The notes below the pieces were generated by a model that was not told where the DNA came from, ran no database searches, and saw only the letters and a list, made by a program, of their open reading frames with translations. A program made the translations under genes and the position numbers. Shown here one piece after another: positions 2,490 through 26,276 of a stretch of 64,000 bases of DNA (position 1 is the stretch's first letter; the number at the start of each line of letters is the position of its first letter). The DNA is from Caecitellus pseudoparvulus (taxonomy: Eukaryota > Protista > Bigyra: Bicosoecida), in NCBI GenBank assembly GCA_965644315.1, contig CBFFRQ010000031.1:682001-746000 (forward strand), written 5' to 3'.

Positions 2490-4763
2490 TCACGCGGTGA
2501 CGCCCATCCAGGGGAAGACGGCCTGCACCGCGAACTGCACTGGCAACCAGGACAGGATGGTGCTGCGCTCGGAGGCCAGCAGGGGCATGATGATGATGCA
2601 GGCAACGTGCAGGAGATCGTACGCACGGCGCAAGGAGCTGGGCGTGGGGCAAGGCAGCAGCGCCAGGCGCATGGCATACGCAGCGACGGCAAAGAAGTGC
2701 GCCACCAACACCCACGGCTTGGGGGTGAGGCCAGCCAGCAGACCCACTGGCCCCGCTGCCTGTGCACCACCCAGGGACATGTACTGCATGCACGCGTCTC
2801 GCAGGCGAGCCCGGGTGCTGTCGGGATCTGCCTTGCCGCCTGCAGCTGCGGGGTTCGTGAATACGCCGTGCAAAGCATTGGCCAGGACGTTGATGGTGGC
2901 GGCATGGTGCCCTCTGGAGGCAGCGTGGGCGGCAAGGGCCACCCCCACGCACCGGGAATTGGTCAAGTCCACTCCCTGCAAGTGTTGCCAGAGGCTGGCG
3001 ACGTCCTTCAAGGCCACTGTCATGCCACCGCCGGTGAGGGGATGGCGCATGTTGAAGCTGTCGCCCAGAGCCACGGCGTGGTTGCGGGTGAAGGGCGTCG
3101 CAGACATGTGCTTGTTGCGGCACACCTCTGCGTTCTGGGTCTTGACGGCTTCTTCAAACAGGTCGCGCACGCCCTCCGGCAGCTGCGGCTTCACGGTGGT
3201 CAGGAGGTACTTCGACAGGGAGCCATCCACCGGATCCGGCAGAGGGGCCGGGACGTCCACGAGGATGCGGGTCTCTGTGGAGGAGATCTGGTACAGCAAG
3301 ACAGGGTTTGGGTTGGCCAAGACGACGTGGCCGTGCCGGGGGTACGGCAGGGGGCAGGAGCCCTCCTCGTGGTGCAGGGCCAGTCCCACGAAGAAGGATG
3401 AAGCCGTCACCTTGGGCTCCGTCAACACGCGCTTGCGCAAGGCAGAGTGTGCGCCATCTGCCACGACGGTCAAAGGGGCTGTCACGGTGTGGCTGTTCTT
3501 CTCGGCATCCACCCACTTGACGCCCACGGCAGTCTCGGCGTTGCCGCCACCCAGCTTCGCGGCGGGGTGGCTTGCGGGCACATCCTGGGGGGAAAGCAGG
3601 GCCGTCACCCGCCCCTCATGCATGGTGATGTTGGGGTGCTGCTTTGCCATGTCGCGCAGCGCCTGCACGAAGCGGTGGTTGTGGAAGGAGCGCCCACGAG
3701 GGTGTTGGGCAGGGGTGCCCGGGCGCGGGTCGAAGCCAGACGACACGGGGCCCCGGGAAGGCTCTCCTACGGGCAACCCTTGCAGGCCTGCAAACTCGGC
3801 GATGGAAGCCGGGTCGTGGGTGGGGTAAGGCAGCACGAGGTCCCTGCTGCGGTCTGCTCCGGGGGTGAAGCAGACATAGCCGTCAACCTGGATGGGGTCG
3901 ATGGCCGAGGTCTTGGCAGCCTCGTCCAGGCCCATGTCCTCCAGGGCTCGGATGCCTCCAGGCTGCATCAGCTCACCCACAATGCGGTGGGGGATCGTCC
4001 AGCTGCGCTCCACGACAGTGACCTTGCGGCCGTCCTTTGCCAGACGAAGGGCCAGAGCCGTGCCGGCAGTACCGGCACCGACAACGACAACCTGCAGGCG
4101 GTGGGGGGGTGGACAGTGGTCTAAAGCGGAGTGTATGCTGTCTGCTGCTCGGTGTGTGGCTGAGCGCCTGCCCGAAAGGGCTGGCTTGTCGCTGATGCTG
4201 CGGTGAGCTTGCACTCACATCAGTGTCAAAGCCAACATCAGTTGCGTGGGTGGTGGCGGGCACAAGCCGAATGGGGGAAGGGCCTGCACTCAAGTCCTCA
4301 TACACCCATGCCACACCGAAGAAGGCCGTCATGTAGCACAGCGTGACCAGCGCAGTGCAGCTTGCCAGCAGCACGTCAGGCTGGGCAACGAAGTACATCA
4401 GCGCATGGTCACGGCCATGGGCAAGCATGAACTGCAGCATGTATGCAACAGAGGTGGCAAACAGGACCAAGGCCAGAGTGTTCGTCACGTTGAACAGGTC
4501 CCATCGAGGTGCAAGATTGCCCTTCGCATCCTGTGCCGGGCGTGAAATCAAGCATGACGTAAGCGTTTCAGCGCAGTTTCACTGCCACCTGCAGACAAAC
4601 TCACCCGCACGGAGTACCTGAACCAAAGGCTTGCCATGACGTACAGCGAGAGGACACCTGCAAACATGGCAACTCCCGTGTAGACATCATGCAGGATGCC
4701 GGCCGCAGCCAGGGCCGCTGGCAGAGCTGCTGAAGCAACCACTGGCAGGGACAGGCTCAGCAT
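2490..4763 (-). CDS. SQLE: Squalene epoxidase (FAD monooxygenase) with extended multi-TM N-terminus
   Basis: Motifs DVVVVGAGTAG, RIVGELMQPGG, GRSFHNHRF, VVADG, GDSFNMRHPLTGGGMTVA. Phase-0 introns 4531-4604 and 4092-4218 join the three ORF pieces (YSVR|DAKG, FDTD|VVVVGAG). ATG at 4763. Confidence 0.92.
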
Positions 4764-11810: not shown

Positions 11811-14300
11811 TCAAGTCACGCTGGGGGGGGAGGTCGCGGCCAGCCAGGGTGCACCTGTGGTGCCGCTGTGGCGTTCTCCTGCGCTTGCAGTGTCCACCAG
11901 CTGCGCCAAGTGTGCCCACATGTCTGCCTCCCCCACCACCGACGTAAGAAGATCTGCAATGGGTGAAGGCTTGGCGTTGCCCAAGACAACGCCGACCACA
12001 GGGGCCACCCAGCCGCGCCCACGCAAGGATTGAATCATGCGAGTGTCGGTCTCCAAGGCGCCTTCCAACTCCAGCACGAGCACTGTACCGCCAACATGGG
12101 TGTCTGTGTACCGACCTATGTTGCTAAGGAAGCCCTCTGGCGACTCTGGCTCCACCTGCGGCACGTCGTGGCCTGCCCTCCACTGCCTGGCCCAGCGCTC
12201 CCGAACGGCGGCAGTGCGGGACACGAAGAAGACCCGAACTGCAGGTTCATGCTCTGCTTCACTCGTTGCAGTTCTCTCTGATATTGCAGGGGGTACGCCA
12301 CGCCGAGAGGTCGCGTTGATCACGACGGTGTCCTCTCCATCTGCCCTCAACGCCCGCACGCCTGCCTGGGCGACTGTGAACCAGACGCCGTTGGCACTCT
12401 GCAAGGCAGAGGTGGGGTCCATGAGGGCCCCCATTTCTCCAGAGAAAGCAGTTTGCACTACAAGCTGCAGGGTCTGCAAGGGCTGGCTGCTGTGGATAAG
12501 CGAGATGGAGGCAGGGTGGCTGGAACCCAGCAGAGCCTTGGGGGCGCCGGGTGCGTTTTCCCCCGCGACCTGAACCAACATATACGTGCTGGTCGGCGTC
12601 ACATGCCCTGCTGTGCCACGTGACAGGCGGCACCCACAGAGGGAGCATGTGCTTTTCTTCTGCCTGCTCAGCGGGATCGGGCGCGGCTCTAAGCGCACCT
12701 GGATGTCCACTGTGCCCATCGGCTGCACTCGCTGTAGTGCCTGGGACATGCACACCGCAATCGCATTTGCCAGCCTCCCGGTGTCCAAGTCAAGTTGCTT
12801 GGGTACGGCGCGGCTGACTTTTAGCTGAACCCGCACATCCTTGATCAGTCTGTACTGCGTCAGGAGGGAGGACAGGAACAGACGGACGTCTGTCGTGCTG
12901 ACGCTGTGCTCCCCAAGCGCAGAGTGAAAGAGAACTTCGTGCTTGTGCTGAATACCGCTTCGCACTGCGCTTGACAGGGCGTTCATGGAGGTGGTGATGG
13001 CCTGCATGGCAGCTCGAAAGCGCTCGTGGGCGGTGTCCCGGGCTGGCAGGGTGGACTGCATGGTCTCCATTTGAGCAGCAATGGTCGCCAGCGGCTGCTG
13101 CAGCATGGTGAGGGTGTCTTCAAGCACCCGTGCTCCAGAGCGCTTTCTTGACGAGTCTGCGTGGAACCAAAGGCCTGCGACGACGGCGATGGCAGTGCAC
13201 GAGGCTGCGGCCGCAGCAATGAGCAACCCCAAGCCTAGCTTTAGACTCGCCACCCGGCGTGCTTCATGGCGAACCTCTTGGTCAACGTAGGCATTGGATG
13301 CAATCTTTGCATACTCCCTAAGCGTCTGCTGCACCCCCAGTAGACGCTCCAGCCAGTCCTCTGGCAGAGCCAGCTGTTCGTGGTCCCCGCTGACACGCTG
13401 CATCGTGGACACAGCGGCTTGGACGAGTTGTGCCGTGAGCAAGAGCGCAGACTTCTTGCCCTTGGACACCGTGGCTTCTGCAGTGCTCATGACACTTGGT
13501 GCAATGCCAGACGAAGGCGAGACAGACCTGAGCATGGCATCCCACAGCACCAGCGTGTCCGTGACTTGCCGCAGCAAGTACAGCGGGGCTGGGCCAATCG
13601 CTGTCAGGTTATCGGCATAGTGATACAGGAGAAAGTTGGTTGCGGCATCCGTTGCGAGAGACTGAGCCGCAATCGGCATGGCGTACACTGAGTGCTGAAA
13701 GCGCTCGTGCTCGCCAACCTCCATCAGCCCCGCCCACATTGGATCCACAATGCTAGACAGCCAGGCGAGGTGGCAACCAGATGTTGTCAACCTGGGAACA
13801 ACAAAGCCTGGTTCCACATACCACTGTGGCACAGGGGTTGTACAAGCTGCAGCCCCCATCGTCCTCCAAGCATCCGCTGTGCGACACTTGTGTCGGACCA
13901 TGCTCAGAGTCTCTTGCACAGGCTCCAGTTGTCGCAGGATTCCTTTCACGTGTGCGTTCACACCGGTACTCTCCTGCAGGGCAAAGAGCCGCTGTAGGGC
14001 GGCATCGGTTGCTTGCTGCTGCTTCATCACAAGCTGGTACTTCCCTGCGTACAGTGGGCTGTGGGACTGGCACATGGCCATCATCGTGTGGGCCTGAAGC
14101 TCAGCAAAACTCTGCATCATGGCCTCACTGATGGCCGAAGCTCCCAACAACAAGCTGCGCTTTGATTCTAACGCCTGTTCGCGGCTGTGGGCATGCTCCG
14201 ACAGCGCGTGTGAAACGTATGCAAAGACCGCAGCCCAGCCGAGCACCAGCACAATGACTCCTACAAACGCAGCAAGCCTCCAGTTCCTGCCCACTCCCAT
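11811..14300 (-). CDS. Two-TM sensor protein with degenerate histidine kinase and receiver-like domains
   Basis: Intronless, 829 aa. TM, long loop, TM, then TLTMLQQPLATI (H-box-like), VPKQLDLDTGRLANAIAVCMSQAL...GTVDIQV (HATPase N-box-like), and a C-terminal receiver-like alpha/beta pattern. Confidence 0.65.
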   Translation of the reverse strand: MGVGRNWRLAAFVGVIVLVLGWAAVFAYVSHALSEHAHSREQALESKRSLLLGASAISEAMMQSFAELQAHTMMAMCQSHSPLYAGKYQLVMKQQQATDAALQRLFALQESTGVNAHVKGILRQLEPVQETLSMVRHKCRTADAWRTMGAAACTTPVPQWYVEPGFVVPRLTTSGCHLAWLSSIVDPMWAGLMEVGEHERFQHSVYAMPIAAQSLATDAATNFLLYHYADNLTAIGPAPLYLLRQVTDTLVLWDAMLRSVSPSSGIAPSVMSTAEATVSKGKKSALLLTAQLVQAAVSTMQRVSGDHEQLALPEDWLERLLGVQQTLREYAKIASNAYVDQEVRHEARRVASLKLGLGLLIAAAAASCTAIAVVAGLWFHADSSRKRSGARVLEDTLTMLQQPLATIAAQMETMQSTLPARDTAHERFRAAMQAITTSMNALSSAVRSGIQHKHEVLFHSALGEHSVSTTDVRLFLSSLLTQYRLIKDVRVQLKVSRAVPKQLDLDTGRLANAIAVCMSQALQRVQPMGTVDIQVRLEPRPIPLSRQKKSTCSLCGCRLSRGTAGHVTPTSTYMLVQVAGENAPGAPKALLGSSHPASISLIHSSQPLQTLQLVVQTAFSGEMGALMDPTSALQSANGVWFTVAQAGVRALRADGEDTVVINATSRRGVPPAISERTATSEAEHEPAVRVFFVSRTAAVRERWARQWRAGHDVPQVEPESPEGFLSNIGRYTDTHVGGTVLVLELEGALETDTRMIQSLRGRGWVAPVVGVVLGNAKPSPIADLLTSVVGEADMWAHLAQLVDTASAGERHSGTTGAPWLAATSPPSVT

Positions 14301-14776: not shown

Positions 14777-17700
14777 ATGGAAGAACTGTCGGGTGTCCTG
14801 TGGAAACACGCAGAGTATTGCGCAGCGCACTCACCATTAACCCTTGCTCACGCCTCATTTCGGTGGGGATGCAGGGCTCAGCCCGGATCCCGGGAAACAC
14901 TTGGCGTGGTGGCCGAGCCTTCCGGCGCCGCAGCCGCAGCCTGCCGCGCAGGGGAGGACGCATGCGGTGCGTCAAGTGCAACCCTCGCTGGGGAGACAGT
15001 GGCATGGGTGCCGCTGGCTGAGGAATGGCGCAGTATCCAAGCTGCTGTGCTGCAGTGGAGTGCATCGCTCATCAGCGCTTCCTCAACATTCACTGAGGTC
15101 GCCGCTATCCGGGCGCTGGACTTTGTGATCAAGACTGTTTCTTCGCGTGCACAAGCATTCCAGGAGCTTGGAATGGAATGCCAGGATGCTTTAAGAGAAG
15201 CCCTGAGTGTACTTGTCCGCAATGCGTGCGCTGAGCCTGGAGAGGCGGCCTTCGCCTCCGAGTTCGCAACACGGCACCAGCGGCCCATGCGATTCGGAGG
15301 GAGCGCGCCGAAAGCAGCGGCCAGCGAAGGCGGAGATGCCGACCACCCTTGGTCCAGCAGCATGTATGAGCCAGAGTGGCTGGCCCTGGAGCTCGTGGGG
15401 CCGAGCTGCATCGCTATGGGAGAGGTCCACACGCTGCTCGCCAGCGCTGTCGACACAGAGCAGGCGCTAGATGGCAGGGGGTCTGCCCATCAAGCCGCCC
15501 GCCTGCACATCATCTCACGCCTCTCAGCCTTGGACGCATCCCTGCTTGAGCTGACCCTGCATCTCCTGCGATCCGCGGCGGCCCAGGGGGAGGCTGTGCC
15601 GCAAGGGCTGCACCAACAGTTGCTTGCCCGCCTCATCGCTCGCTTTTCCAGCAGCATGTGTGCGAATATGGCAGATCCCACATCCCTGAAAGTTCTGGAT
15701 GCTCAGTCCATCTCGCCCACCATGCTTCGAGCCGCTGCAATCTTGACGCTTGGGCCGGGCGAGCAAGAGCAACCTCTCATCTTGCTTGAGCGTACGCTTC
15801 GTGTCCTGCAGCTTGAGCAGCGCTTTGAAGGTGACCTCGCCCAAGAAGAGCTGGAAGACCATGAACTAGATCTGCAAGTGCATCGCCTTTTGTTGCTGCA
15901 GGTGGCTTTGAGCGTTTGGACCCGCAACGCAGATGCGGCGGGCAACTTGGCTGCAAATACCGTCTGCGCTCAACGCCTCTCGAAGATTGGGGCTGAAATG
16001 CCCTCGCCGGAAGATCCCCCAGGCGTGCTATCGAAAGCAAGAAAACGCCTGTGTCCGGGATCGTTGTTCACATTGAGCGGAACGGAGCAAGGGCCGAGGT
16101 TTGCAGTCGGTGATGAGGTCAGTTCTCTGTGGAGCGGAGGAGGCAATTCGTCAATCTTCCCCGGGAGGGTGTCCGCAGTGAAGAAAGAGGAAGATGGCTT
16201 CCATTTTGACATTGCATACGATGATGGGGATCGAGACGTTGGCCAGGTGGCTACAAATGTCTTTCCAAGAGGAGCATTCGACCGAACGTGGGCTTCCTTG
16301 CCTTACCTGCATGGCCTGGTCCTTGAAGAGGCGCCTGGGCACCCGGTCGATGATGTTGCCCAGCGGCTATTCCGAGTTGCGCTGTTGGGACCGCCTAAAG
16401 TCGTCGGCGAGCGTTCACAGCTGCTTGTGGGCTTCATCCGTGAGGCAGCCCTTGAACCTGCCTCTATGTCAACACCCTTTCCAGACTGGCTGCCATCTTA
16501 CCTAGTGCGCACTCCCGCAGGCTCTCTCGGATTCATCAAAGGTCGGTCCTTGCCGCAACAAGGGGCTGCGCCGCCTGGGGCTGTTCTGGTCGTTCATGCG
16601 CTGGCTGGGGGAGGGCAAGGGGGCTCTAGCTTTGAAGAGTCCACTGATGCAGCAGCTCTGCAGTCAATCACTTCTATGTCTGGCGCATTGACGGCGGCCG
16701 TGCAAGGTCCGCAAAGCGCCACGAAGAGTCTTCACCGCACCCAAGCCATGGCTGACATGGCAACCGTGCTGTGGGAGTCTCTCAAGTTGGACGCCAGTGT
16801 GACTCTGAAGGAGCTCTGTGCAAGTACCACTGGCTCAGTTCATGAAAGCGTGCCTCATGCCGCAGCATTTGTCGTGTTCACAACTGTGCTCAGGGCTCTC
16901 GCAGCCACAGTTGCGGCCACTGCGTTTGCGAATCTGCCCGGTCGGGCGCACAAGGCTTGTGAGTTCCTGAACACTGCCATGCAGATTGGCATCAAGCAAG
17001 GGAAAGTGTGCCCGACTGCACGTCCCGACGTGGATGCAGCTGTGGCAACTCTGGCTGCCAGTGAATGCCATGCTCTGAACTGCGTGCGCAGCTTCGTACA
17101 GTTCCTTCGCCCCTGCACGAGTCAAAGCCCTGCCGCGTGCCTTGCTCATGGTTTTCTTGCCAGCCAGGGCTGGATCCACTTTGGGAACTGGCTTCGAGCT
17201 GCTGGTCATAGCGCAGGGGGATCGGTAGTGGGCGCTTTGGACAGTATCCTTCAACAAAGCGCTCAGCCACGTCACTCCATGGAAGCGCTTTCGAGTGTGT
17301 ACGACTTGCTCTCAGCCTCCTTTAGGGCAGCTGGTCGCTTCCTCCCTGACTCAGCTCTCCTAGTGCATGGTTTCGCACAGTCTGTGCAAGTTGTTCTCGT
17401 CAGGCGCCTGAAACGTTTGCTCCCTGACTTCCTCCCAGAGTTGTCAAACTGCATGACAAAGCTGCTGACTCAAGATGGCCGTCTTGCAGATGAACAAGCA
17501 AGCATGCAAGTTTTAAAGGCGGTCAGGCTTTTGGTTGAAGTGCTCACACTCCGTATTGGTGTGCCTCAAGGAATTGGCTCCGCTCTCCCGCTCTTGGCTC
17601 TTGCCGCCCAGTCGGGTATTTGTGTCGGGGCTCTCATGGGCCAAGCCAATGATTCGCTGGATGCCTGCATCCCCGAGCAGCTTACACACCTTCCTGCTGA

Positions 17701-20700
17701 TGAGATGAAGTCGGCGCTGCGCCACATTGCACTCACTCTGCCGGACCTTTGTGAAACTACCCACCTGGAGCCCTTGCTTGAAGCTGTTCGAAGTGCGCCT
17801 CTGGTTCACCATGCGCACAAGGGCTCGGCGAGTGCACGCTGCACTCTCCTTGCGAACCCCCTAATGCCGACTGCTGCCTTGATCTGGCACGACCCGGGCA
17901 CGCTGCTGCTGTGCGCAGCATGGGGACAAGCCCTCCAGCGCACGATTCGGCGCCAGCTCTTGAGTGCCCTGTCTGCAAGCCTGACAAGCGTGCCAGACGC
18001 AATCCGCATTGCAGCTGCGTGCTCCACATTGCTACACACAGCCCTGCATCAGGTCCCAACCCTCGCTTTCCCCAATGCTCCGGTTTGCAGGAGCCATGCA
18101 ACTCCGCTGGCACTTGCTGTGCTGCGGCAGACAACTGCCAGTCAGCAGGCCACAGCAGCTACGAAGATTTGCCGAGTGCTCGCGCTCCTCTCGCATCCCG
18201 ACGCTCAAGACTGCGTTGGGCCTGCTCATCGCTTGCTGCATGGTGCGAAGGCTAGGGTGAGCCCTGTAGAGGTGCTCAGGGTGTCCATTGCGAGCATGGC
18301 AGATCTTACAGCCGCTTTGGGCTGCGCAGAGCTGGTTGAGGCTTCCTTAACTCCCACCATTGGCTGCCGCCTTCTTCGCAAGGAGTGCTCCCCAGAAGCT
18401 GTCGCCGCCTGGGTGGCATCGTGGGACCTGAAGCCACCAACCCGTCAGGTAGATCCCGCAAGCTCTGTTGCACGGCCAGTTTTGCACGCATGGCATGCAG
18501 GTACAGCCGCAGGCTTACATAGCAGCTGCATCTCGGACTTGGAAAGCAAGCATTTTCTTGCAAAGCCTTACATGCCAAGCCAAGAAAACAGAGTCGAGCG
18601 ACTGTGCCTGAAGCTTGGCGAAGAGCAACAGCCCGCCCACTTTAACCTGGGCGTGCTGCCAAGATCAGCAGACTTGCAAGCCACGCGTCGAGAATCATGG
18701 ACGTCGCTCCGCAAAATGATTCGCAGCTTTCAGTGCGACTGGCAAAGCTCTTGGTCGACTTCCACTTCCAGCCAAGCCGAAGGATCCCCCTTTAGCATGA
18801 ACCCCATCCCTGCGCTGGGCAGAGAGAGTGCTGCTACAGCCACGTCCGCCTTCATCGGGCCAGCCTCAGTGTGGCGCTCAGTGTCATCCGCTGGTCCGAT
18901 GCAGCTTTCTCTACCACCTGCGCTGAGAAAAGGGCTGCTTGCCGCTGAGGCTGCCTACAGCACTCTTTGGCCCAACAGACAGGTCGTTTGGGATCTGCCT
19001 TCCAGTGAAGCGCACATCGAGGCATGGCTTCCTTTGTGGAAGGGCGTTGTCGTCCTGGATGGCATTTCCGCCAGCATTCTGCTGCTCTTCCAGACGACCT
19101 CCTGCAGCATGACTGCCCCCAGGCTTTCTGTGCGGCAAATAGCAGCGCGCTTGGGCATTCCATTGCCCCTGCACAGGCAAGCTGCGACAGCTTTGTTGAA
19201 GTTGGTCAGCCCAGGCCAGGCAATTCTCACATGCAGCCTCGTGCCTGGCGGGAACGCATACACAGGGACCCCCACATTTCCTCCAGACTGTGTCTTCGAG
19301 TTGAACCACAAATTCTTCGTTCCGGAGGAGGTGGTTGAGCTGCGCAGGAGGTATACAGGCCGCGACCCTGCCGTTGACGAAGGGCAGGTCCGGGCCTGGC
19401 GACGTTCCTTGACGAAAGCAGTCATCACTCGACACCTGAAGTCAGTGAAGGATGTCTCCTTCAAGAACTTGCATGGCGCCATTTCGGAGGCGCTGCAACA
19501 CCTCTTTCCCGTGTCACCGGCAGAGACCCGAGACTGTATCATGGAGTTGCAGGCCTGTGGCATGCTGTTTTCGTCATGCGATGCAGACGCACCTTCCCCG
19601 GATGTACCGCCGAGCTTGATGACCTGCTTCACGGAAATGAAGCTGGCATACTGCCCAGACCCTCTCCTGGTGCAGGCACAAGCAACTACGGACCCAGCAT
19701 GGAGCCGCTCCGCGCCGGCGCCTGCCCCCCCTCCTCCAGAAATCGAAGCTCTCCCGGAACCTCCTCAGCAACCGCCGCTTGTAAAGTCAGATCGATCAAC
19801 CATTGCTGACCAGTCGTTGCTCATTCCTTCAGCCATGCACGGCCTTGAGCTGTCACTGCTGCCGCCAGACTTTGGACCATGGACCTCGGCCCTCAGAGTG
19901 ATGGAGAAACGGAACCCTGCGAGCACCACCGGCTTGCGCTGGATGATGAAGCAAGCTGCCATTCTTTCAAACACTTGCGGGATCTTGTTCGAAGAAGGCA
20001 TGCTGATGCTTGCTGCCGAGGGTGGCTGCGTTGACGTTGCTGTGGAGCGCTTCCTGGCCTGCCCACTTGAGCAGGCTCTGCGATGTGGCTTGCCTCCAGG
20101 CAGGTTACGAAGGCACACACTGAACTGTGTAGCAAAAGGAATGCCGCCTCTTTGCGCTGCTATCGGCGGCTTCCCATCTCGAGATTCTGCACGTGCCGTG
20201 CCCTGTGAAGAGTTGGCACAAGTGCTGGCTGACTTTCGTCAGCTTCCTCGAGGTGCTGCGTCTGGACAGGTGGCCGTCAGCGGAGCGATTCCGCTGTCCC
20301 TCAATGCTCTGGATTGCTGCCATTCGGGAGTTTGGAGCGCGGAGGCGTCCCTTGAAGAGGCTCTCTCAGCAGACCGCTGCGCCGCGCGCTCCGCACTGGA
20401 AGGCATCGACTGCCCCGTGTGCTTGGATGAAGTCCCAAGGTCAGAGTTGTGGCAACCCTGGTGTGCACATGTGGCATGTATGAATTGCTGGCACGAGCAC
20501 GTTTCCGCTGAGCTTGCTCGTGGGTCACCTTGGCTGACTTGCATGATGTCTGGATGTCGGGCATGCGTGTCCCTGGGCGACCTGGCTCAGATCCTGGACA
20601 AATCTGGGGGCTCAGCTGGGGGTGCTCCTGCGCACGAACATACGATTGCGGCTTATGCTACACGGTTTCTCAAGCTGGCACTATCAGCAAAGGGGCTGCC

Positions 20701-22648
20701 ATCTGTTCCTGGGCTTGGCGGCAGTACTTCGACCCTCACTTCGCTGCAGCTGCACGGCACGATAAACTTGCACCAAGCTGCCATGGACCCGCTTAGTTTG
20801 CTGGGATTCACGGGTATGTTTGAAGAAGCACCACTGTCTCCCCTTTGGTCACGTGTGCTCCTGAGCACTTCAGCTCTTCACAGGCTCGCTTCGGTGCTTG
20901 GATGCATAGCTGGCGGGCCGCAAAAGGTCTTGCAGAAGGTCTCAAGCGGTGCCCCGGGTTCCCTTGACTCGTTTGTTCACGCCATGGCAGTCATGTGTAG
21001 CGTCTCGTCCGAGGCTTACTTGGGGGGCGAAATTCGGCACCCGCTTGTGGATTTGGTGATGGTCGCCCCCGCAACACACAGCACGTACTGTGAACACGCA
21101 GAGGTAGCAGAGAGTGACCCAGCACTTTCAGACGCACCCCACGCTCCTGCTCTGTCCAGTGCAAGGCACTTCATTGGCCACCTACTGTCCGCATTTGGCG
21201 GTGCGCGGCTTGCCCCCCTGAATGCCACGGGTCCCGTCAGGCTGTCTGCCAAAGCACGGCGCGCAGTGGATGAGAGCAAGGCAGGAAGCGATAACCGCCG
21301 GAGAGCTGTCTCAGGATCACAAAAACAGCGTCCAGCCCCAGATGAATTGCACCTGCACGCGCACGTGCTTGCTCTGTGGCATGGCACCTGGTACCCAGCC
21401 CTCATCGAGGAGCAGGTCGGAGCTGCCTGGCGAGTCGCCTATACAACTGACGAAACGGTGGAGGTGTTGCCACCTTCTAAACTCAAGTTGGACCCCAGTA
21501 TTCCCGAGGATGGAAGAGACTTCGGGCCGGAGCCGCTTCTACCGGATGGGCAGAAGGTGACTGCGATTTGGAACCGATCAAGTGAGTGGCCCGGCACTAT
21601 CTCCAGCAGTCGCCTTCTGAACCACGGCGAATGGGTGTACACCGTACAGTTTGATGATGGTGGTGTTGAGAAGTCGCTTGCTTTGGCTCACCTCAAAGTC
21701 GACGGGGTCAGGCCTGTTCCAACAAGACCGCGAGGCTCCGCAGCCCCACGCACGGCCTCCGCCTCCCGCGAGCAACCATGGGACACCTCCACGGCTCCTC
21801 AAGTGTGGCAGAACGTGGAAGGTGGAAGCAAGGGCAGTGGCTTGCAGCCATGCACATCGTGTGCACTTCCCCGGCACACACCAGTCCCGTGCAGCATCAT
21901 GCAAGCTTGGAAGGCGGCGGGCGGATTCGTCGAGGAGTCACGGGAGACGGCAGCAACGCTTCGTTGGCAGCTGGAGAACACAAAGCCCTGTCCAAATTGT
22001 GGCATGAGGGTAAATAAGAACGGCGGCTGTGTAGCCATGGTGTGCACTTCGTGTCAGTACCATTTCTGCTGGGGTTGCCTGGGCCCAGAGCACAGCCACG
22101 CCGCCACATGCACGCGCCCCGTCCAGGACTCTAGGTTCAGGGTGGGAGGCAGTTCGAACTTTGAAGCCTGCAATCTGACAGTGCTGAAGTTGTCAAAGTT
22201 GGCGAGGGCCGCTCACTCCCTCTCCATTGAGCTCGGCCAAAGCACGCTCCGGGCATCGATGAATTGCGGGCAAGTCCTAGCACTGGAGCAGCTTCATGCG
22301 TGTGTGCTCTTGCTGGCAGCAGCATACAGGCTCTGTCAGAGCATGCACGTTCTCGACCACTTTTCAGGATCAATGGTTAGTGTCGCAGCCATGCTGAATT
22401 TTCGCCTGGAGGAGTTGAAGGCGGCGGCCAAGGTGGTTGAGAGCAGCATTCCACTTCGCTTGGGCGAGCCTGGGCCCTTGAGGGAACTGCTGCTAGGGCC
22501 TCTCGCTGGCGAAGTGGCTGTGTTCATTTGGATGGATGCATCCCGCGCCATTCACAGACTTCTGCACGCCTTGGACGCCGCAGTTCGCGTCAGTCTGGTG
22601 ACGGTCTCCGAGCTGCTCAAGGCCAACGCATCCACCCGCAGTGCTTGA
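14777..22648 (+). CDS. Cullin-homology + Ariadne-type RBR E3 ligase fusion with Tudor-like domains
   Basis: Intronless, 2623 aa. Cullin C-terminal motifs (PNRQVVW, SILLLF, LSVRQIAARLGI, FELNHKF, KAVITRHLKSVK); RING1 CPVC...CAHVACMNCW...CMMSGC; RING2 TKPCPNCGMRVNKNGGCVAMVCTSCQYHFCWGC. Confidence 0.85.
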   Translation: MEELSGVLWKHAEYCAAHSPLTLAHASFRWGCRAQPGSRETLGVVAEPSGAAAAACRAGEDACGASSATLAGETVAWVPLAEEWRSIQAAVLQWSASLISASSTFTEVAAIRALDFVIKTVSSRAQAFQELGMECQDALREALSVLVRNACAEPGEAAFASEFATRHQRPMRFGGSAPKAAASEGGDADHPWSSSMYEPEWLALELVGPSCIAMGEVHTLLASAVDTEQALDGRGSAHQAARLHIISRLSALDASLLELTLHLLRSAAAQGEAVPQGLHQQLLARLIARFSSSMCANMADPTSLKVLDAQSISPTMLRAAAILTLGPGEQEQPLILLERTLRVLQLEQRFEGDLAQEELEDHELDLQVHRLLLLQVALSVWTRNADAAGNLAANTVCAQRLSKIGAEMPSPEDPPGVLSKARKRLCPGSLFTLSGTEQGPRFAVGDEVSSLWSGGGNSSIFPGRVSAVKKEEDGFHFDIAYDDGDRDVGQVATNVFPRGAFDRTWASLPYLHGLVLEEAPGHPVDDVAQRLFRVALLGPPKVVGERSQLLVGFIREAALEPASMSTPFPDWLPSYLVRTPAGSLGFIKGRSLPQQGAAPPGAVLVVHALAGGGQGGSSFEESTDAAALQSITSMSGALTAAVQGPQSATKSLHRTQAMADMATVLWESLKLDASVTLKELCASTTGSVHESVPHAAAFVVFTTVLRALAATVAATAFANLPGRAHKACEFLNTAMQIGIKQGKVCPTARPDVDAAVATLAASECHALNCVRSFVQFLRPCTSQSPAACLAHGFLASQGWIHFGNWLRAAGHSAGGSVVGALDSILQQSAQPRHSMEALSSVYDLLSASFRAAGRFLPDSALLVHGFAQSVQVVLVRRLKRLLPDFLPELSNCMTKLLTQDGRLADEQASMQVLKAVRLLVEVLTLRIGVPQGIGSALPLLALAAQSGICVGALMGQANDSLDACIPEQLTHLPADEMKSALRHIALTLPDLCETTHLEPLLEAVRSAPLVHHAHKGSASARCTLLANPLMPTAALIWHDPGTLLLCAAWGQALQRTIRRQLLSALSASLTSVPDAIRIAAACSTLLHTALHQVPTLAFPNAPVCRSHATPLALAVLRQTTASQQATAATKICRVLALLSHPDAQDCVGPAHRLLHGAKARVSPVEVLRVSIASMADLTAALGCAELVEASLTPTIGCRLLRKECSPEAVAAWVASWDLKPPTRQVDPASSVARPVLHAWHAGTAAGLHSSCISDLESKHFLAKPYMPSQENRVERLCLKLGEEQQPAHFNLGVLPRSADLQATRRESWTSLRKMIRSFQCDWQSSWSTSTSSQAEGSPFSMNPIPALGRESAATATSAFIGPASVWRSVSSAGPMQLSLPPALRKGLLAAEAAYSTLWPNRQVVWDLPSSEAHIEAWLPLWKGVVVLDGISASILLLFQTTSCSMTAPRLSVRQIAARLGIPLPLHRQAATALLKLVSPGQAILTCSLVPGGNAYTGTPTFPPDCVFELNHKFFVPEEVVELRRRYTGRDPAVDEGQVRAWRRSLTKAVITRHLKSVKDVSFKNLHGAISEALQHLFPVSPAETRDCIMELQACGMLFSSCDADAPSPDVPPSLMTCFTEMKLAYCPDPLLVQAQATTDPAWSRSAPAPAPPPPEIEALPEPPQQPPLVKSDRSTIADQSLLIPSAMHGLELSLLPPDFGPWTSALRVMEKRNPASTTGLRWMMKQAAILSNTCGILFEEGMLMLAAEGGCVDVAVERFLACPLEQALRCGLPPGRLRRHTLNCVAKGMPPLCAAIGGFPSRDSARAVPCEELAQVLADFRQLPRGAASGQVAVSGAIPLSLNALDCCHSGVWSAEASLEEALSADRCAARSALEGIDCPVCLDEVPRSELWQPWCAHVACMNCWHEHVSAELARGSPWLTCMMSGCRACVSLGDLAQILDKSGGSAGGAPAHEHTIAAYATRFLKLALSAKGLPSVPGLGGSTSTLTSLQLHGTINLHQAAMDPLSLLGFTGMFEEAPLSPLWSRVLLSTSALHRLASVLGCIAGGPQKVLQKVSSGAPGSLDSFVHAMAVMCSVSSEAYLGGEIRHPLVDLVMVAPATHSTYCEHAEVAESDPALSDAPHAPALSSARHFIGHLLSAFGGARLAPLNATGPVRLSAKARRAVDESKAGSDNRRRAVSGSQKQRPAPDELHLHAHVLALWHGTWYPALIEEQVGAAWRVAYTTDETVEVLPPSKLKLDPSIPEDGRDFGPEPLLPDGQKVTAIWNRSSEWPGTISSSRLLNHGEWVYTVQFDDGGVEKSLALAHLKVDGVRPVPTRPRGSAAPRTASASREQPWDTSTAPQVWQNVEGGSKGSGLQPCTSCALPRHTPVPCSIMQAWKAAGGFVEESRETAATLRWQLENTKPCPNCGMRVNKNGGCVAMVCTSCQYHFCWGCLGPEHSHAATCTRPVQDSRFRVGGSSNFEACNLTVLKLSKLARAAHSLSIELGQSTLRASMNCGQVLALEQLHACVLLLAAAYRLCQSMHVLDHFSGSMVSVAAMLNFRLEELKAAAKVVESSIPLRLGEPGPLRELLLGPLAGEVAVFIWMDASRAIHRLLHALDAAVRVSLVTVSELLKANASTRSA

Positions 22649-22922
22649 GGGGGCGTGGAAGAGTATGCATTTGCTCGTCTCTAGCTGGCCAACTGTGCGA
22701 GGCTTGGTCTGGGTCATTTGGAATGCCACTCTTGGCCCATAGCATCGAGTCTGCACGGCACCAGCTGCCAAGGGTCAAGGCACCCCTCCCGCAGTCAAGT
22801 GGTCTGACAGCTTGAGGGGTACACACTGCACGCTGGCTGCCAAAGCGAAAAGCACCTAGTCCCAGGGGAATGAGCGTGTAGATAAAACAGCAGAGGGGCA
22901 TCAATGCATCTACGAGCAAGCC

Positions 22923-25900
22923 ATGGAGCATGCACAAGGTGCAAACGTACCAGTGAGTTTGGGAGCGTTTGAGCGTTTCCTGAAGCATTCAACTCATTCC
23001 CCTGCCGGCTTCAGGAGGAACCAAGTCAGGTTGGGGAAAGGGACGACTCCTTAGATGGTGCTTTACTTCAGTCTCTGCCCCCCAAAGAGGGCACTGGCCA
23101 GGAGGATGCAGCCTCCTCGCCAGATGCACAGGCTGGCGCTGGTCACCCCGATGGTGCGGCGCAGGAAGAAGCCTCCCAAGACAGGGGTGGCACTGCCTCT
23201 GTGGCAAGTGACAGTGAAAGCGCAAGCTCTGGAGATGATTCCTCGAGCGAAGAGGAGACAGACGACGAGTTCGAGGTCCCAGTGCGAAGCCACGGCGCGT
23301 GGGACGCGTTCGTGGATGAAGAAACTCGAGAGGAGTACTACTACAACCGCGAGACAGACGAGACTACGTGGGAGCCACCCATCCCCGAGATCATGCCCCC
23401 ACACCTAGCAGCACTTGAGTTCCTCTCCAAGCTCATGAGTAACCCGTATGACCCAGAGCAGCCTCACCCGCTGTCCTCCTTTGGACTGTGGAGCGTCTAT
23501 GTGGACCATGAGTCCATGTCCATGTACTATGTGAGTGTGCCATACCCCCCTATGCTGCAAGAAGTGAAGAGAAAGAACCTGCTTGGCCGCCTTCCACGCC
23601 ACAGTGCAACGACGAGACTGGGGAGACGTCCTGGGATCCGCCTGAGGACTGGGATGAGAAGCTGGCCAGCATCCCACCCCTCGCCATCTTGACAGAGGAT
23701 CCAGATGACCCAGACGAAGCTGCTTTCTTGAAGCTTGTCAGTAAGGATGCCGATGGTGGTGAAGGTCGCCCAACATGTGTGGCTACAGCAAGGGAGCCTG
23801 AGACTCCAGGCGGCACTGCGCGCAGCGGCGGTGCACCAAGCGAGCCTTCCGAGCCAAGCGCGCCTGCGCCGAGCACAGGCACTGACATCTCCGCCCAACC
23901 TGTGCCCCCTGACGTCCCAGGTGGGCCTGACCCTTCAAAGGTTTGGTTTGTGTACCGCGATATTGAGAGCCTGATGCAATACTTCGTGAACAGCAAGACC
24001 GGGGAGTCCCGGTGGGAACCGCCTGCAGCCATTGCCGACAAAGTTGTGCAGGACGAATCAGCGACGATTCAGCCTGGGGAGTGGGAGAAGTACCTCAGCT
24101 CTGATTCAGACGCCAAGGATGATGTTGTGGCTCGCGTCAATGGCTGGGAAGTGTACCAAGATCGGAAGTCTGGCCGATGGTACTACTTCAACCCAGACAG
24201 CGGAGAGACATGTTGGGATGCCCCCCCCGCGGTCATGGCAGCAGCCCCGGAGGATTGGGAAGCTGGAGGTGCCACGATGGATGCAAGTGGAAACGTTGTG
24301 GATGACTCCAGTTCTGATGTGCAGGATGAGTCTGAGGACAACTTGCCAGCTTCAGCGATGGAGGCATCTTCCCCTCCTTCCCGCCCTGAAACGGCGCAAG
24401 GCGCAAGTCCAAGGCTTGATTCCGTGCCAGTGCCTGAAGATCACGAAGAAGAAGACGCCCTGCTGGCCCTTGGGGCTCCTCAGAGTCCCGAGAGCCCGGA
24501 AGGAAGCGAGCACGCCGCAACCAGCCCAAAAGCTCCAGAAACAGCTGCTGAAGCAGCACCACGTCCTGATGCACCGAAACCTTCGTAAGTCCCTGACATT
24601 GGTGCATGTTACTTGATGCATTCTCATGCCCCCCCCTCCCCTTTGTGTGCAGGTTGGAGGTTGGCAAGGAGTGTGGAACTGCACTTGGTGCTGATGAAGG
24701 CAAAGAAGACTTGCCGCGCTCCGTAGCAGAAACACCACATGTCCCCCTTGACTCGGGACTCGCCCAGGGCCAAGCTCCAACGGAACCGGCGGAAAGCCGT
24801 CCTCTTCAGATGCAGGCAGCAGGCCCGCGACCTGTAAGTGGTGAGCGACAAGGTGAGTCGGCACTTGTGTCGGATGGATCAGGGACAGCGCAACAAGCCC
24901 GGGGTGACGAAGGTGACGGCGACAAACGTACCGATACCGCTGTAGAAGTCTCAAGTGCCAAGCTCGACAAGTCAGTCATGCCAGCAAAGGAAAGAAAAGA
25001 GGGCAAGAAGGGTAAGAAGGACAAGAAGGGTAAGAAGGACAAGAAGGGCAAGAAGGGCAAAAAGAGTAAGAAGGGAAAAAAGAGTAAGAAGGCCAAGCTG
25101 CCTTCAACTTCGGGGGCAGCAGGAGACTCAGATAGTGATGATGACGATCTAGGCGACCTTTTGGGAACCAACACTGCGGCTCAACACCACCGGCCACTAG
25201 AGGCAGGCGCTGCAGTGCAGCAGGGTGTTGTGCAGCTTGCACAGGTGCCGGCCAAGCCTCGTGGCGGTACATCGGTAATGGACGCCATTGCCATGATTCA
25301 AAGGGCATACGGGCATGCAGAGTCTGACGCTGAGAGTGAGGGGGTGGGCGAGGACCACGTTGAAGCTGAGGCCCATCCCACAGACAAGGCTGGAGAGGGG
25401 TCACCTCCGCGACCCCAGAAGAAGGCTGATGAAGGAGCAACTTACAAGATTTTCATGCCCCCTCCACCAAAGCCAGCTGACTCTTCCGGGCTGGGTTTCA
25501 ACTTCGCCATGACTGTGAAGAGCAAGAAGTATGGGAAGAAACCAGCTGCACCCGGGATGGAGCTGGAGGACCCTGAAGAAGTCGAGCAGCAGCGCCGAGC
25601 TGCCGAGCAGGCAGCCATCCGGGAGAGGATTCTCGCCGCGCAAGAGGCAAAGAGGAAGCAAGAGGAAGAGGACAGGAACCTTGCAGAATTGGAGGGGGGG
25701 GACGATGGGTCTGCTACTGCCCTCAATCTTCTTGCTTCTGCTGCAGGGCTGTCTGCGACCGTGTTGGCCCGCATGCTTGAGAAGAGGAAGTTGGACGACC
25801 CGAACAACCAAGGCCTGCTAGCCTGGGCAAAGGCATTCCAAAGCAAGACCAAGAAGCAAATTTCAACCCTCGAAGGCAGGCTTCGTCTTGACAAGGGAAT

Positions 25901-26276
25901 GACTGAGGAAACTGTGACAAAGTGCCAGGAAGAAGTCGCACGGCTAAAGGCTCTTGTGCAGAAACTCAAGGAGTGGGAGGCAGATGAACGCAAGCGCCGG
26001 CGCGAAATGGACGAAGCCATGAAGGAGCAGCTGCGACAGCAAGCCGAGGCAGAGAAACAGCGCCTGGCACAGAAGCGCATCCGCATCCAGAAGGAGCGGG
26101 AGGAGGCAAAGGCCAGGATCCTTGCCGAAAAGCGGCGGCGGGCTGATGAAGCCCGTGCTGCGAAGGCCAAGAGAAGAGCTGAAGACGCTGCTGCCGCTGA
26201 AGCCAGGAAAGCGGCAAAGGCGGCAGAGCTGGAGCGCAAGCGAGCAAAGGCTGCGCAAGCAAGGATGGCTCGATGA
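22923..26276 (+). CDS. Protein with four WW domains, KKx repeat and C-terminal coiled coil
   Basis: WW motifs YYYNRETDETTWEPP, YY|CNDETGETSWDPP, YFVNSKTGESRWEPP, YYFNPDSGETCWDAPP. Introns 22953-23014, 23531-23604, 24585-24652. Confidence 0.8.
25005..25094 (+). repeat. 9-bp periodic coding repeat encoding (KK[G/D/S/A]) x10
   Basis: KKGKKDKKGKKDKKGKKGKKSKKGKKSKKA in the translation; AAGAAGGNN periodicity in the DNA. Confidence 0.85.

Follow-up and report, generated by a model that had tools for sequence, protein, structure and literature searches.

The window, that is, the whole stretch of 64,000 nucleotides analysed here from the bicosoecid flagellate Caecitellus pseudoparvulus, contains a long open reading frame that raises the question of whether a protist joins a cullin and an Ariadne-type RBR ubiquitin ligase in a single chain and, if so, whether that chain arose apart from the CUL9/PARC of animals or shares its origin. 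CUL9 has been described as vertebrate-specific (PMC11257990) and CUL7/PARC as chordate-restricted (PMC2785787), and the current account holds that CUL9 arose in vertebrates when a CUL7 duplicate became fused with an ARIH gene (PMC11257990). A preliminary description of the locus had accordingly proposed an independent, convergent fusion. The reading that we favor, at a probability of roughly two in three, is instead that the 2623-aa protein belongs, together with the vertebrate CUL9, to an ancient CUL9-like family of cullin–Ariadne fusions, within which it has evolved fast.

A single reading frame encodes the fusion

Beginning with an ATG at 14777 and terminated at 22648, the frame is open over 2623 codons and encodes both a cullin and an RBR part.

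14777..22648, plus strand: cullin-RBR fusion ORF, 2623 aa; intact in independent contigs

The gene is single-copy at the DNA level in a genome of 30.6 Mb (215 contigs, with an 18S of 1697 nt). A contig of 26 kb, obtained in a separate sequencing run, spans positions 17000-22900 with 54 substitutions and zero gaps, while a seawater-type metagenome contig from the ENA carries the whole ORF within the same neighbourhood, free of indels and stops, and differs from it over the entire ORF by 46 synonymous and 41 non-synonymous codons, which proportion corresponds to a pN/pS of 0.30. Because two assemblies agree and the pN/pS is of that magnitude, the fusion is real DNA on which purifying selection acts, and the earlier depiction of one intronless cullin–Ariadne RBR frame in a protist stands. 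The opposite explanation—namely, that two genes or an intron-split gene were misread as one ORF, or that the region was mis-assembled—would be favored by the RNA-labelled reads, possibly DNA, which gave scattered pieces at the locus with none bridging the WHB domain and RING1; but the two independent assemblies without a stop or an indel, the selection on the ORF, and the same one-ORF layout in a paralog, as well as in a dozen further organisms, make that explanation very improbable.

The cullin half

Three cullin regions were delimited:

17924..18571, plus strand: helical cullin region, CR3/4HB-like (aa ~1050-1265), with a degenerate cullin 'RLL' motif; assigned through R1198, the model and structural alignment
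18866..19321, plus strand: cullin alpha/beta (C/R) and first winged-helix subdomains; profile match, and BLAST against the paralog at 72 bits
19373..19585, plus strand: WHB neddylation domain, with K1555 at 19439-19441; Pfam Cullin_Nedd8, invariant Lys and fold match

The Pfam Cullin model gave no match to the fusion in a search of its own genome that recovered four canonical cullins and APC2, a direct phmmer search of the PDB returned zero sequence matches for the cullin part, and the Cullin_Nedd8 match at residues 1542-1591 (E=1.5e-4) lies under the cut-off and is weak by Pfam alone. In contrast to those sub-threshold results, a cullin HMM built from the other fusions, the four canonical cullins, and APC2—the 2623-aa fusion itself being left out—gave a match of 51 bits over residues 1364-1597 (E=4.5e-18, calculated for one target). 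That match covers the alpha/beta subdomain and both winged helices, and places KAVITRHLK (19415-19441) in register with DAAIVRIMK; within the 18866..19321 segment an RQVVW strand occupies the place of the cullin RRLxW. K1555, which residue corresponds to the AIVRIMK lysine of the four canonical cullins, is invariant across the 15-row alignment, in agreement with the preliminary description of a winged helix at ~19390-19570 with a lysine in that position.

The cullin segment proposed at ~18900-19330 is thus significant by profile, but its start was estimated too far downstream: the region probably begins near residue 1050 (nt 17924), some 1 kb upstream, because the structural matches reach back to that residue. 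The helical region (aa ~1050-1265) was not detected by sequence profile alone; its R1198 is invariant in alignment A1, and the predicted model has a pLDDT of mostly 60-85 over aa 1050-1190 and lower beyond. With the model of residues 1050-1640 (mean pLDDT 61) only cullins were among the Foldseek matches listed, and the best structural match was the CUL1 WHB (VIA-align Z 11.6, rmsd 1.5 A over 71 residues), which support is partly circular because the fold model made use of an alignment of cullins.

The chain continues for 1000 aa past the WHB, where cullins of the canonical CUL1-5 type, with their N-terminal adaptor-binding repeats, come to an end; the 2623-aa fusion fits neither of those two features.

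The RBR half and its remodelled catalytic core

The remaining features are as follows:

16094..16261, plus strand: Tudor/SH3-like domain 1 (aa ~440-495); Pfam Tudor_5 E=0.001-0.004, below the cut-off
19931..20101, plus strand: Ariadne UBA-like element, degenerate and without its conserved Trp; scored at 11.2 bits, the best of 1000 shuffles reaching 3.2
20411..20557, plus strand: RING1 with eight of eight C3HC4 ligands (C1879, C1882, C1896, H1898, C1901, C1904, C1922, C1927)
20567..20701, plus strand: probable RING1-to-IBR helix, from its position in the RBR alignment
20702..21841, plus strand: insert of ~380 aa replacing IBR zinc site I, with only three scattered Cys
21350-21490 and 21539-21706, plus strand: two Tudor-like domains within the IBR insert; Pfam Tudor_3 27.3 bits, above the cut-off, in two stretches
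21851..21892, plus strand: C-terminal half of the IBR, zinc site II (C2359, C2362, H2367, C2372)
21893..21982, plus strand: linker between IBR and Rcat, in which the motif of the CUL9-like group, W-x(2-4)-[GERN]G[FY], is present
21983..22114, plus strand: Rcat/RING2; Pfam IBR_1 42 bits, Rcat zinc ligands intact
22139..22636, plus strand: Ariadne-like helical tail, alignable with fusion-group tails

The IBR/RING2 region is above the Pfam cut-offs, and the best PDB sequence match of the RBR half is ARIH1; a single-sequence fold of this half had a pLDDT of 38 and was unusable. The positions listed in the preliminary description were right for RING1 (~20410-20560), for a partial IBR (~21850-21895), for RING2 (~21980-22115), and for the helical tail, within which the Pfam Ariadne model found no match. 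The UBA-like segment noted at ~19940-20090 rises above the shuffled sequences, but is degenerate and elicits no Pfam match. That list, moreover, had missed the three Tudor-like domains, the insert at IBR site I, and a substitution in the Rcat.

Those last two changes affect the catalytic core. A complete two-zinc IBR is absent, since site II alone is present and site I has given way to an insert in both this fusion and its paralog. In the Rcat, the catalytic Cys2418 (22028-22030) is retained and the catalytic His is replaced by Ala2420 (22034-22036), at which position His occurs in every other row of alignment A3, ten in number, and Arg in the fusion P0019. That His deprotonates the acceptor in several RBR ligases, but is not fully conserved among them (PMC9834252). 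Residues 2353-2623 show zero amino-acid changes between two strains.

We also considered whether the Tudor/SH3 modules might represent the CPH domain of CUL9, which identification was not supported, no similarity to the fish CPH being found.

A paralog and other RBR genes in the same genome

Besides four canonical cullins and APC2, the genome has two weak WHB matches: the 2623-aa fusion and an ORF on another contig (G000:C92 107144-120127, minus strand; L006/L007), hereafter the C92 paralog, of 4327 aa and with the same cullin-RBR plan. This paralog has the Lys at the neddylation site and keeps both the Cys and the His of the Rcat; its IBR zinc site I is also lost, with no Tudor domain being detected within the insert there, and instead of Tudor domains it has Mib/SH3 repeats along with SPRY/Neuralized-like domains. 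The two proteins are sisters in all the trees, and a duplication within the lineage of this flagellate is the best reading of their relationship. A spliced RBX1 gene and a UBA3-type E1 domain are likewise present in the genome.

Three further RBR genes were observed. A 3128-aa ORF (G000:C30 47492-56878, plus strand; L008/L009) combines ankyrin-like repeats with a complete Ariadne-type RBR and is without a cullin. A 1719-aa protein (G000:C13 20400-25559, plus strand; L010) contains C2-like, ankyrin, and RBR domains, with a SPRY-like insert behind the Rcat. A plain Ariadne RBR (L035 2134-3372, minus strand; G000:C13 near 517 kb) has CPWTMDD opening its RING1, the first zinc site of which looks lost, unless an exon boundary lies there.

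Distribution of cullin-RBR fusions

Word searches disclosed few relatives: with the whole C-terminal half only the protein itself and one fish CUL9 were matched, with the RBR part only the protein itself, and with the RBR of P0019 no named fusion; the Atlas searches yielded just one IBR cluster. Among the best 150 matches, at least nine other clusters at 50% identity, with P0031/P0188 included and the 2623-aa fusion and the C92 paralog left out of the count, consist of long proteins having a cullin region upstream from an Ariadne-type RBR. In six of these clusters (P0128/P0156, P0019, P0029, P0087, P0026, and P0188) the Cullin and the IBR matches both exceed their Pfam cut-offs. A metagenome scan gave five further contigs with a cullin upstream from an RBR, three of the five as one ORF, which contigs may overlap with the clusters; at none of the remaining metagenome RBR loci, for many of which the DNA extends several kb upstream, was an upstream cullin present. 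The contigs that host fusions range from 33 to 61% GC.

The named members of the RBR clade come from the chrysophyte Ochromonadaceae CCMP2298, the amoebozoan Clastostelium, and a fish, the chrysophyte and amoebozoan members being RBR fragments in neither of which the cullin part was seen; for four RBR fragments the contigs are too short upstream to reveal a cullin. At the start of P0156 is a DOC domain (ANAPC10, 52.7 bits), which can be aligned with that of the fish CUL9.

In the literature we found no report of cullin-RBR fusions outside the chordates, in a search that lay outside most subscription journals and the older RBR surveys; the portions consulted of a pan-eukaryote cullin study (PMC12816148) and of a Dictyostelium review (PMC9108976) present no such fusion. 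The view from which the preliminary description started, that a CUL9-type fusion is specific to animals, or to chordates, is what the literature states, but the same plan recurs in many microbial eukaryotes, and a paper describing it there was not found.

Several of these loci merit a separate comment. The P0156 ORF at L041 5721-13286, a protist-type locus with DOC, cullin, WHB, RING1, and IBR in one frame, is the closest match to the domain set of CUL9. The P0026 cluster (e.g., L045 10001-13768) comprises intronless CUL9-like proteins of 1253-1266 aa that start at the cullin region and are located on gene-sparse contigs; its RBR has 47% identity to that of the fish CUL9, and the host is possibly a non-vertebrate animal. 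The ORF call of P0011 (L063) opens with an IFT46 domain ahead of the cullin-RBR, which arrangement is probably a read-through gene call. Finally, many AT-rich intronless RBR genes (L085-L141) have a common Rcat motif and no upstream cullin, and we would guess that these resemble the RBR ligases of giant viruses.

Common descent or repeated fusion

Separate phylogenies were obtained for the two halves. In the cullin tree, whose outgroup consisted of the four canonical cullins and APC2 only and in which many branches are long, all twelve fusions, the fish CUL9 among them, lie together to one side of a branch that is supported at 99/99. AU tests reject the joining of the 2623-aa fusion and its paralog to each of the four canonical cullins of their own genome (p 5e-5 to 9e-4). 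In the RBR trees, the other fusions and CUL9 come together in every sampling (87-98). The 2623-aa fusion and the paralog, represented by ~135 usable core columns of biased composition, lie inside the CUL9 group in two of three mixture-model samplings (93 and 98) and outside it, with weak support, in two larger trees; for the 51-row set a quick mixture tree is quoted, and its fragment group was chosen after an earlier tree. A grouping with the other RBRs of the genome is not rejected by the AU tests on this half (p 0.074 and 0.29).

Evidence of other kinds was gathered on the same question. The W-x(2-4)-[GERN]G[FY] linker motif occurs in 13 of 13 fusion-group proteins and elsewhere, among 118 rows, is confined to 6 fragments that belong to that clade; a motif at the IBR start is also common to the 2623-aa fusion and CUL9. 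The RBR of the 2623-aa fusion is scored at 190 bits by the fusion-group HMM versus at most 169 by 100 HMMs of non-fusion Ariadne proteins, and three control non-fusion RBRs scored in the opposite direction. The pairwise identities of the cullin and RBR halves are correlated (Mantel r 0.75, p 1e-4), which coefficient is inflated by near relatives.

The cullin tree, the AU tests on the cullin half, the linker motif, the HMM scores, and the codivergence of the halves lead us to prefer one old fusion with changing accessory domains, which explains the results better than does repeated fusion; common descent with CUL9, considered on its own, appears likely to us, and the 2623-aa fusion is probably a deep co-orthologue of that protein. 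If, alternatively, a cullin and an Ariadne RBR had been fused independently in the lineage of this flagellate, or among protists separately from CUL9, one might expect accessory domains different from those of CUL9, as is the case; and such an origin would be consistent also with the unstable RBR placement, with the unrejected alternatives in the RBR tests, with a Trp before the WHB helix that is common to the protist fusions and absent from CUL9, and with the propensity of this genome to join RBRs to many other domains. Long-branch attraction, furthermore, could pull divergent cullins together. On the side of the RBR convergence retains some probability, because the AU tests there reject no alternative and long branches may attract. 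For the protein as a whole, nevertheless, the rejection by AU tests of descent from any canonical cullin of the genome, the linker and IBR-start motifs in common with CUL9, the DOC domain of P0156, the identical domain order everywhere, the co-diverging halves, and the relatedness to the fish RBR of the P0026 group, which does not look chordate, render a second fusion rather unlikely, and the convergence put forward originally is not what we would now propose.

Comparison with CUL9 and related ligases

The closest known system is CUL9/PARC, whose structure is available (PMC11257990). Both proteins have the cullin C-terminal region, WHB-Lys, RING1, IBR, and Rcat in the same order, with a UBA-like element, degenerate in the 2623-aa fusion, and a putative Ariadne domain in the corresponding places, with the IBR-Rcat linker motif in common; the adaptor-binding CR1 is undetected; and the fish CUL9 groups with the 2623-aa fusion in the cullin tree and in most of the RBR trees. 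In contrast, the 2623-aa fusion is without the TP53-binding CPH (searched with Pfam Cul7 and by BLAST against the fish CPH), without the DOC that occurs in its relative P0156, and without the CUL7/9 ARM and N-terminal beta-barrel, and possesses instead three Tudor-like domains; it differs also in the insert that occupies the position of IBR zinc site I and in the Ala of the Rcat. Because the CPH, the DOC, and a complete IBR are all missing, we do not class this protein as CUL9 proper.

ARIH1 and ARIH2, which act with neddylated CRLs (PMC3817463, PMC11257990), contain the same catalytic parts as the RBR half, but are separate partner proteins that operate with a substrate receptor, and their linker is without the GG[FY] motif. 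CUL7, for its part, is a non-canonical cullin of the same group without an RBR.

Proposed mode of action

By analogy with those systems, the 2623-aa fusion is probably a neddylation-gated E3-E3 assembly in one chain. RBX1 would bind the cullin C/R domain, whose fold is predicted, in the manner of CUL9 and of ARIH1-CRL; NEDD8 might then be attached to K1555, for which reaction the Lys is present and the genome holds a UBA3-type E1 domain and RBX1. The neddylated WHB and the RBX1 RING would engage the UBA-like and Ariadne elements so as to free the Rcat, upon which an E2~ubiquitin could dock on RING1 and the ubiquitin be passed to Cys2418, the residues for both steps being in place. Substrates may be picked by the built-in Tudor-like domains and the helical N-terminus and not by an adaptor.

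In this protein the final transfer of ubiquitin is probably slower or takes another route, since Ala stands where the catalytic His would be and the IBR has had one half replaced; the C92 paralog, in keeping both the Cys and the His, is the likelier enzyme of full activity. Alternatively, the 2623-aa fusion, though of the same ancestry, would be a pseudo-ligase or a ubiquitin-trapping scaffold that binds RBX1, an E2, or the paralog and recruits substrates through its Tudor domains while the C92 paralog carries out the catalysis, to some extent as CUL7 partners other CRLs. The Rcat His-to-Ala change being unique among 11 aligned close relatives, the losses of IBR site I and of the UBA-like Trp, and the longest branch in the family are all compatible with this alternative. 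The retention of Cys2418, of all the RING1 and Rcat zinc ligands, and of K1555 is less so, as are the identity of the two strains over residues 2353-2623, the incomplete conservation of the His in active RBRs (PMC9834252) and its replacement by Arg in P0019, and the combination in the paralog of a missing IBR site I with a full dyad; we accordingly hold the pseudo-ligase to be a possible outcome, yet not the one to be expected, and retain the gated ligase as our working scheme.

Implications for the history of CUL9

A broader and more tentative proposition joins the two lines of argument: that the fusion family is an ancient eukaryotic one extending over stramenopiles, amoebozoans, and animals, so that CUL9 was not a vertebrate invention and CUL7 is a truncated derivative, and that at the same time the 2623-aa fusion functions as a neddylation-gated ligase whose IBR is split, whose catalytic core contains Tudor readers, and whose active site is without the His. 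We consider the conjunction of all those elements doubtful.

If the family is as we describe, the full fusions across microbial eukaryotes, one of them with a DOC domain, would reverse the vertebrate-origin story of CUL9, and CUL7 would become the derived, truncated form; the ancestral role would be independent of TP53, and simple model organisms would become available for the poorly understood CUL9 pathway. To that family picture this locus contributes a duplication and a remodelled catalytic core, which core bears upon how much loss an RBR may tolerate under purifying selection, both paralogs having lost half of the IBR and the 2623-aa fusion the catalytic His as well.

Neighbouring genes and a mitochondrial-like contig

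Upstream from the fusion gene, in divergent orientation and ~480 bp from its start, is an ORF of 813-829 aa (window 11811-14300, minus strand) that has zero Pfam matches, yet is under strong purifying selection (pN/pS 0.08). The downstream gene (window 23100-26276, plus strand) encodes WW domains and is probably spliced; no tie to the ligase was seen. Farther off, at window 2490-4214 on the minus strand, is a squalene epoxidase gene (Pfam SE, 265 bits). Elsewhere in the assembly, a contig of 41.7 kb (G000:C213, L061) is mitochondrial-like, with 22% GC in the part read, TGA coding for Trp, and a short nad11-like frame.
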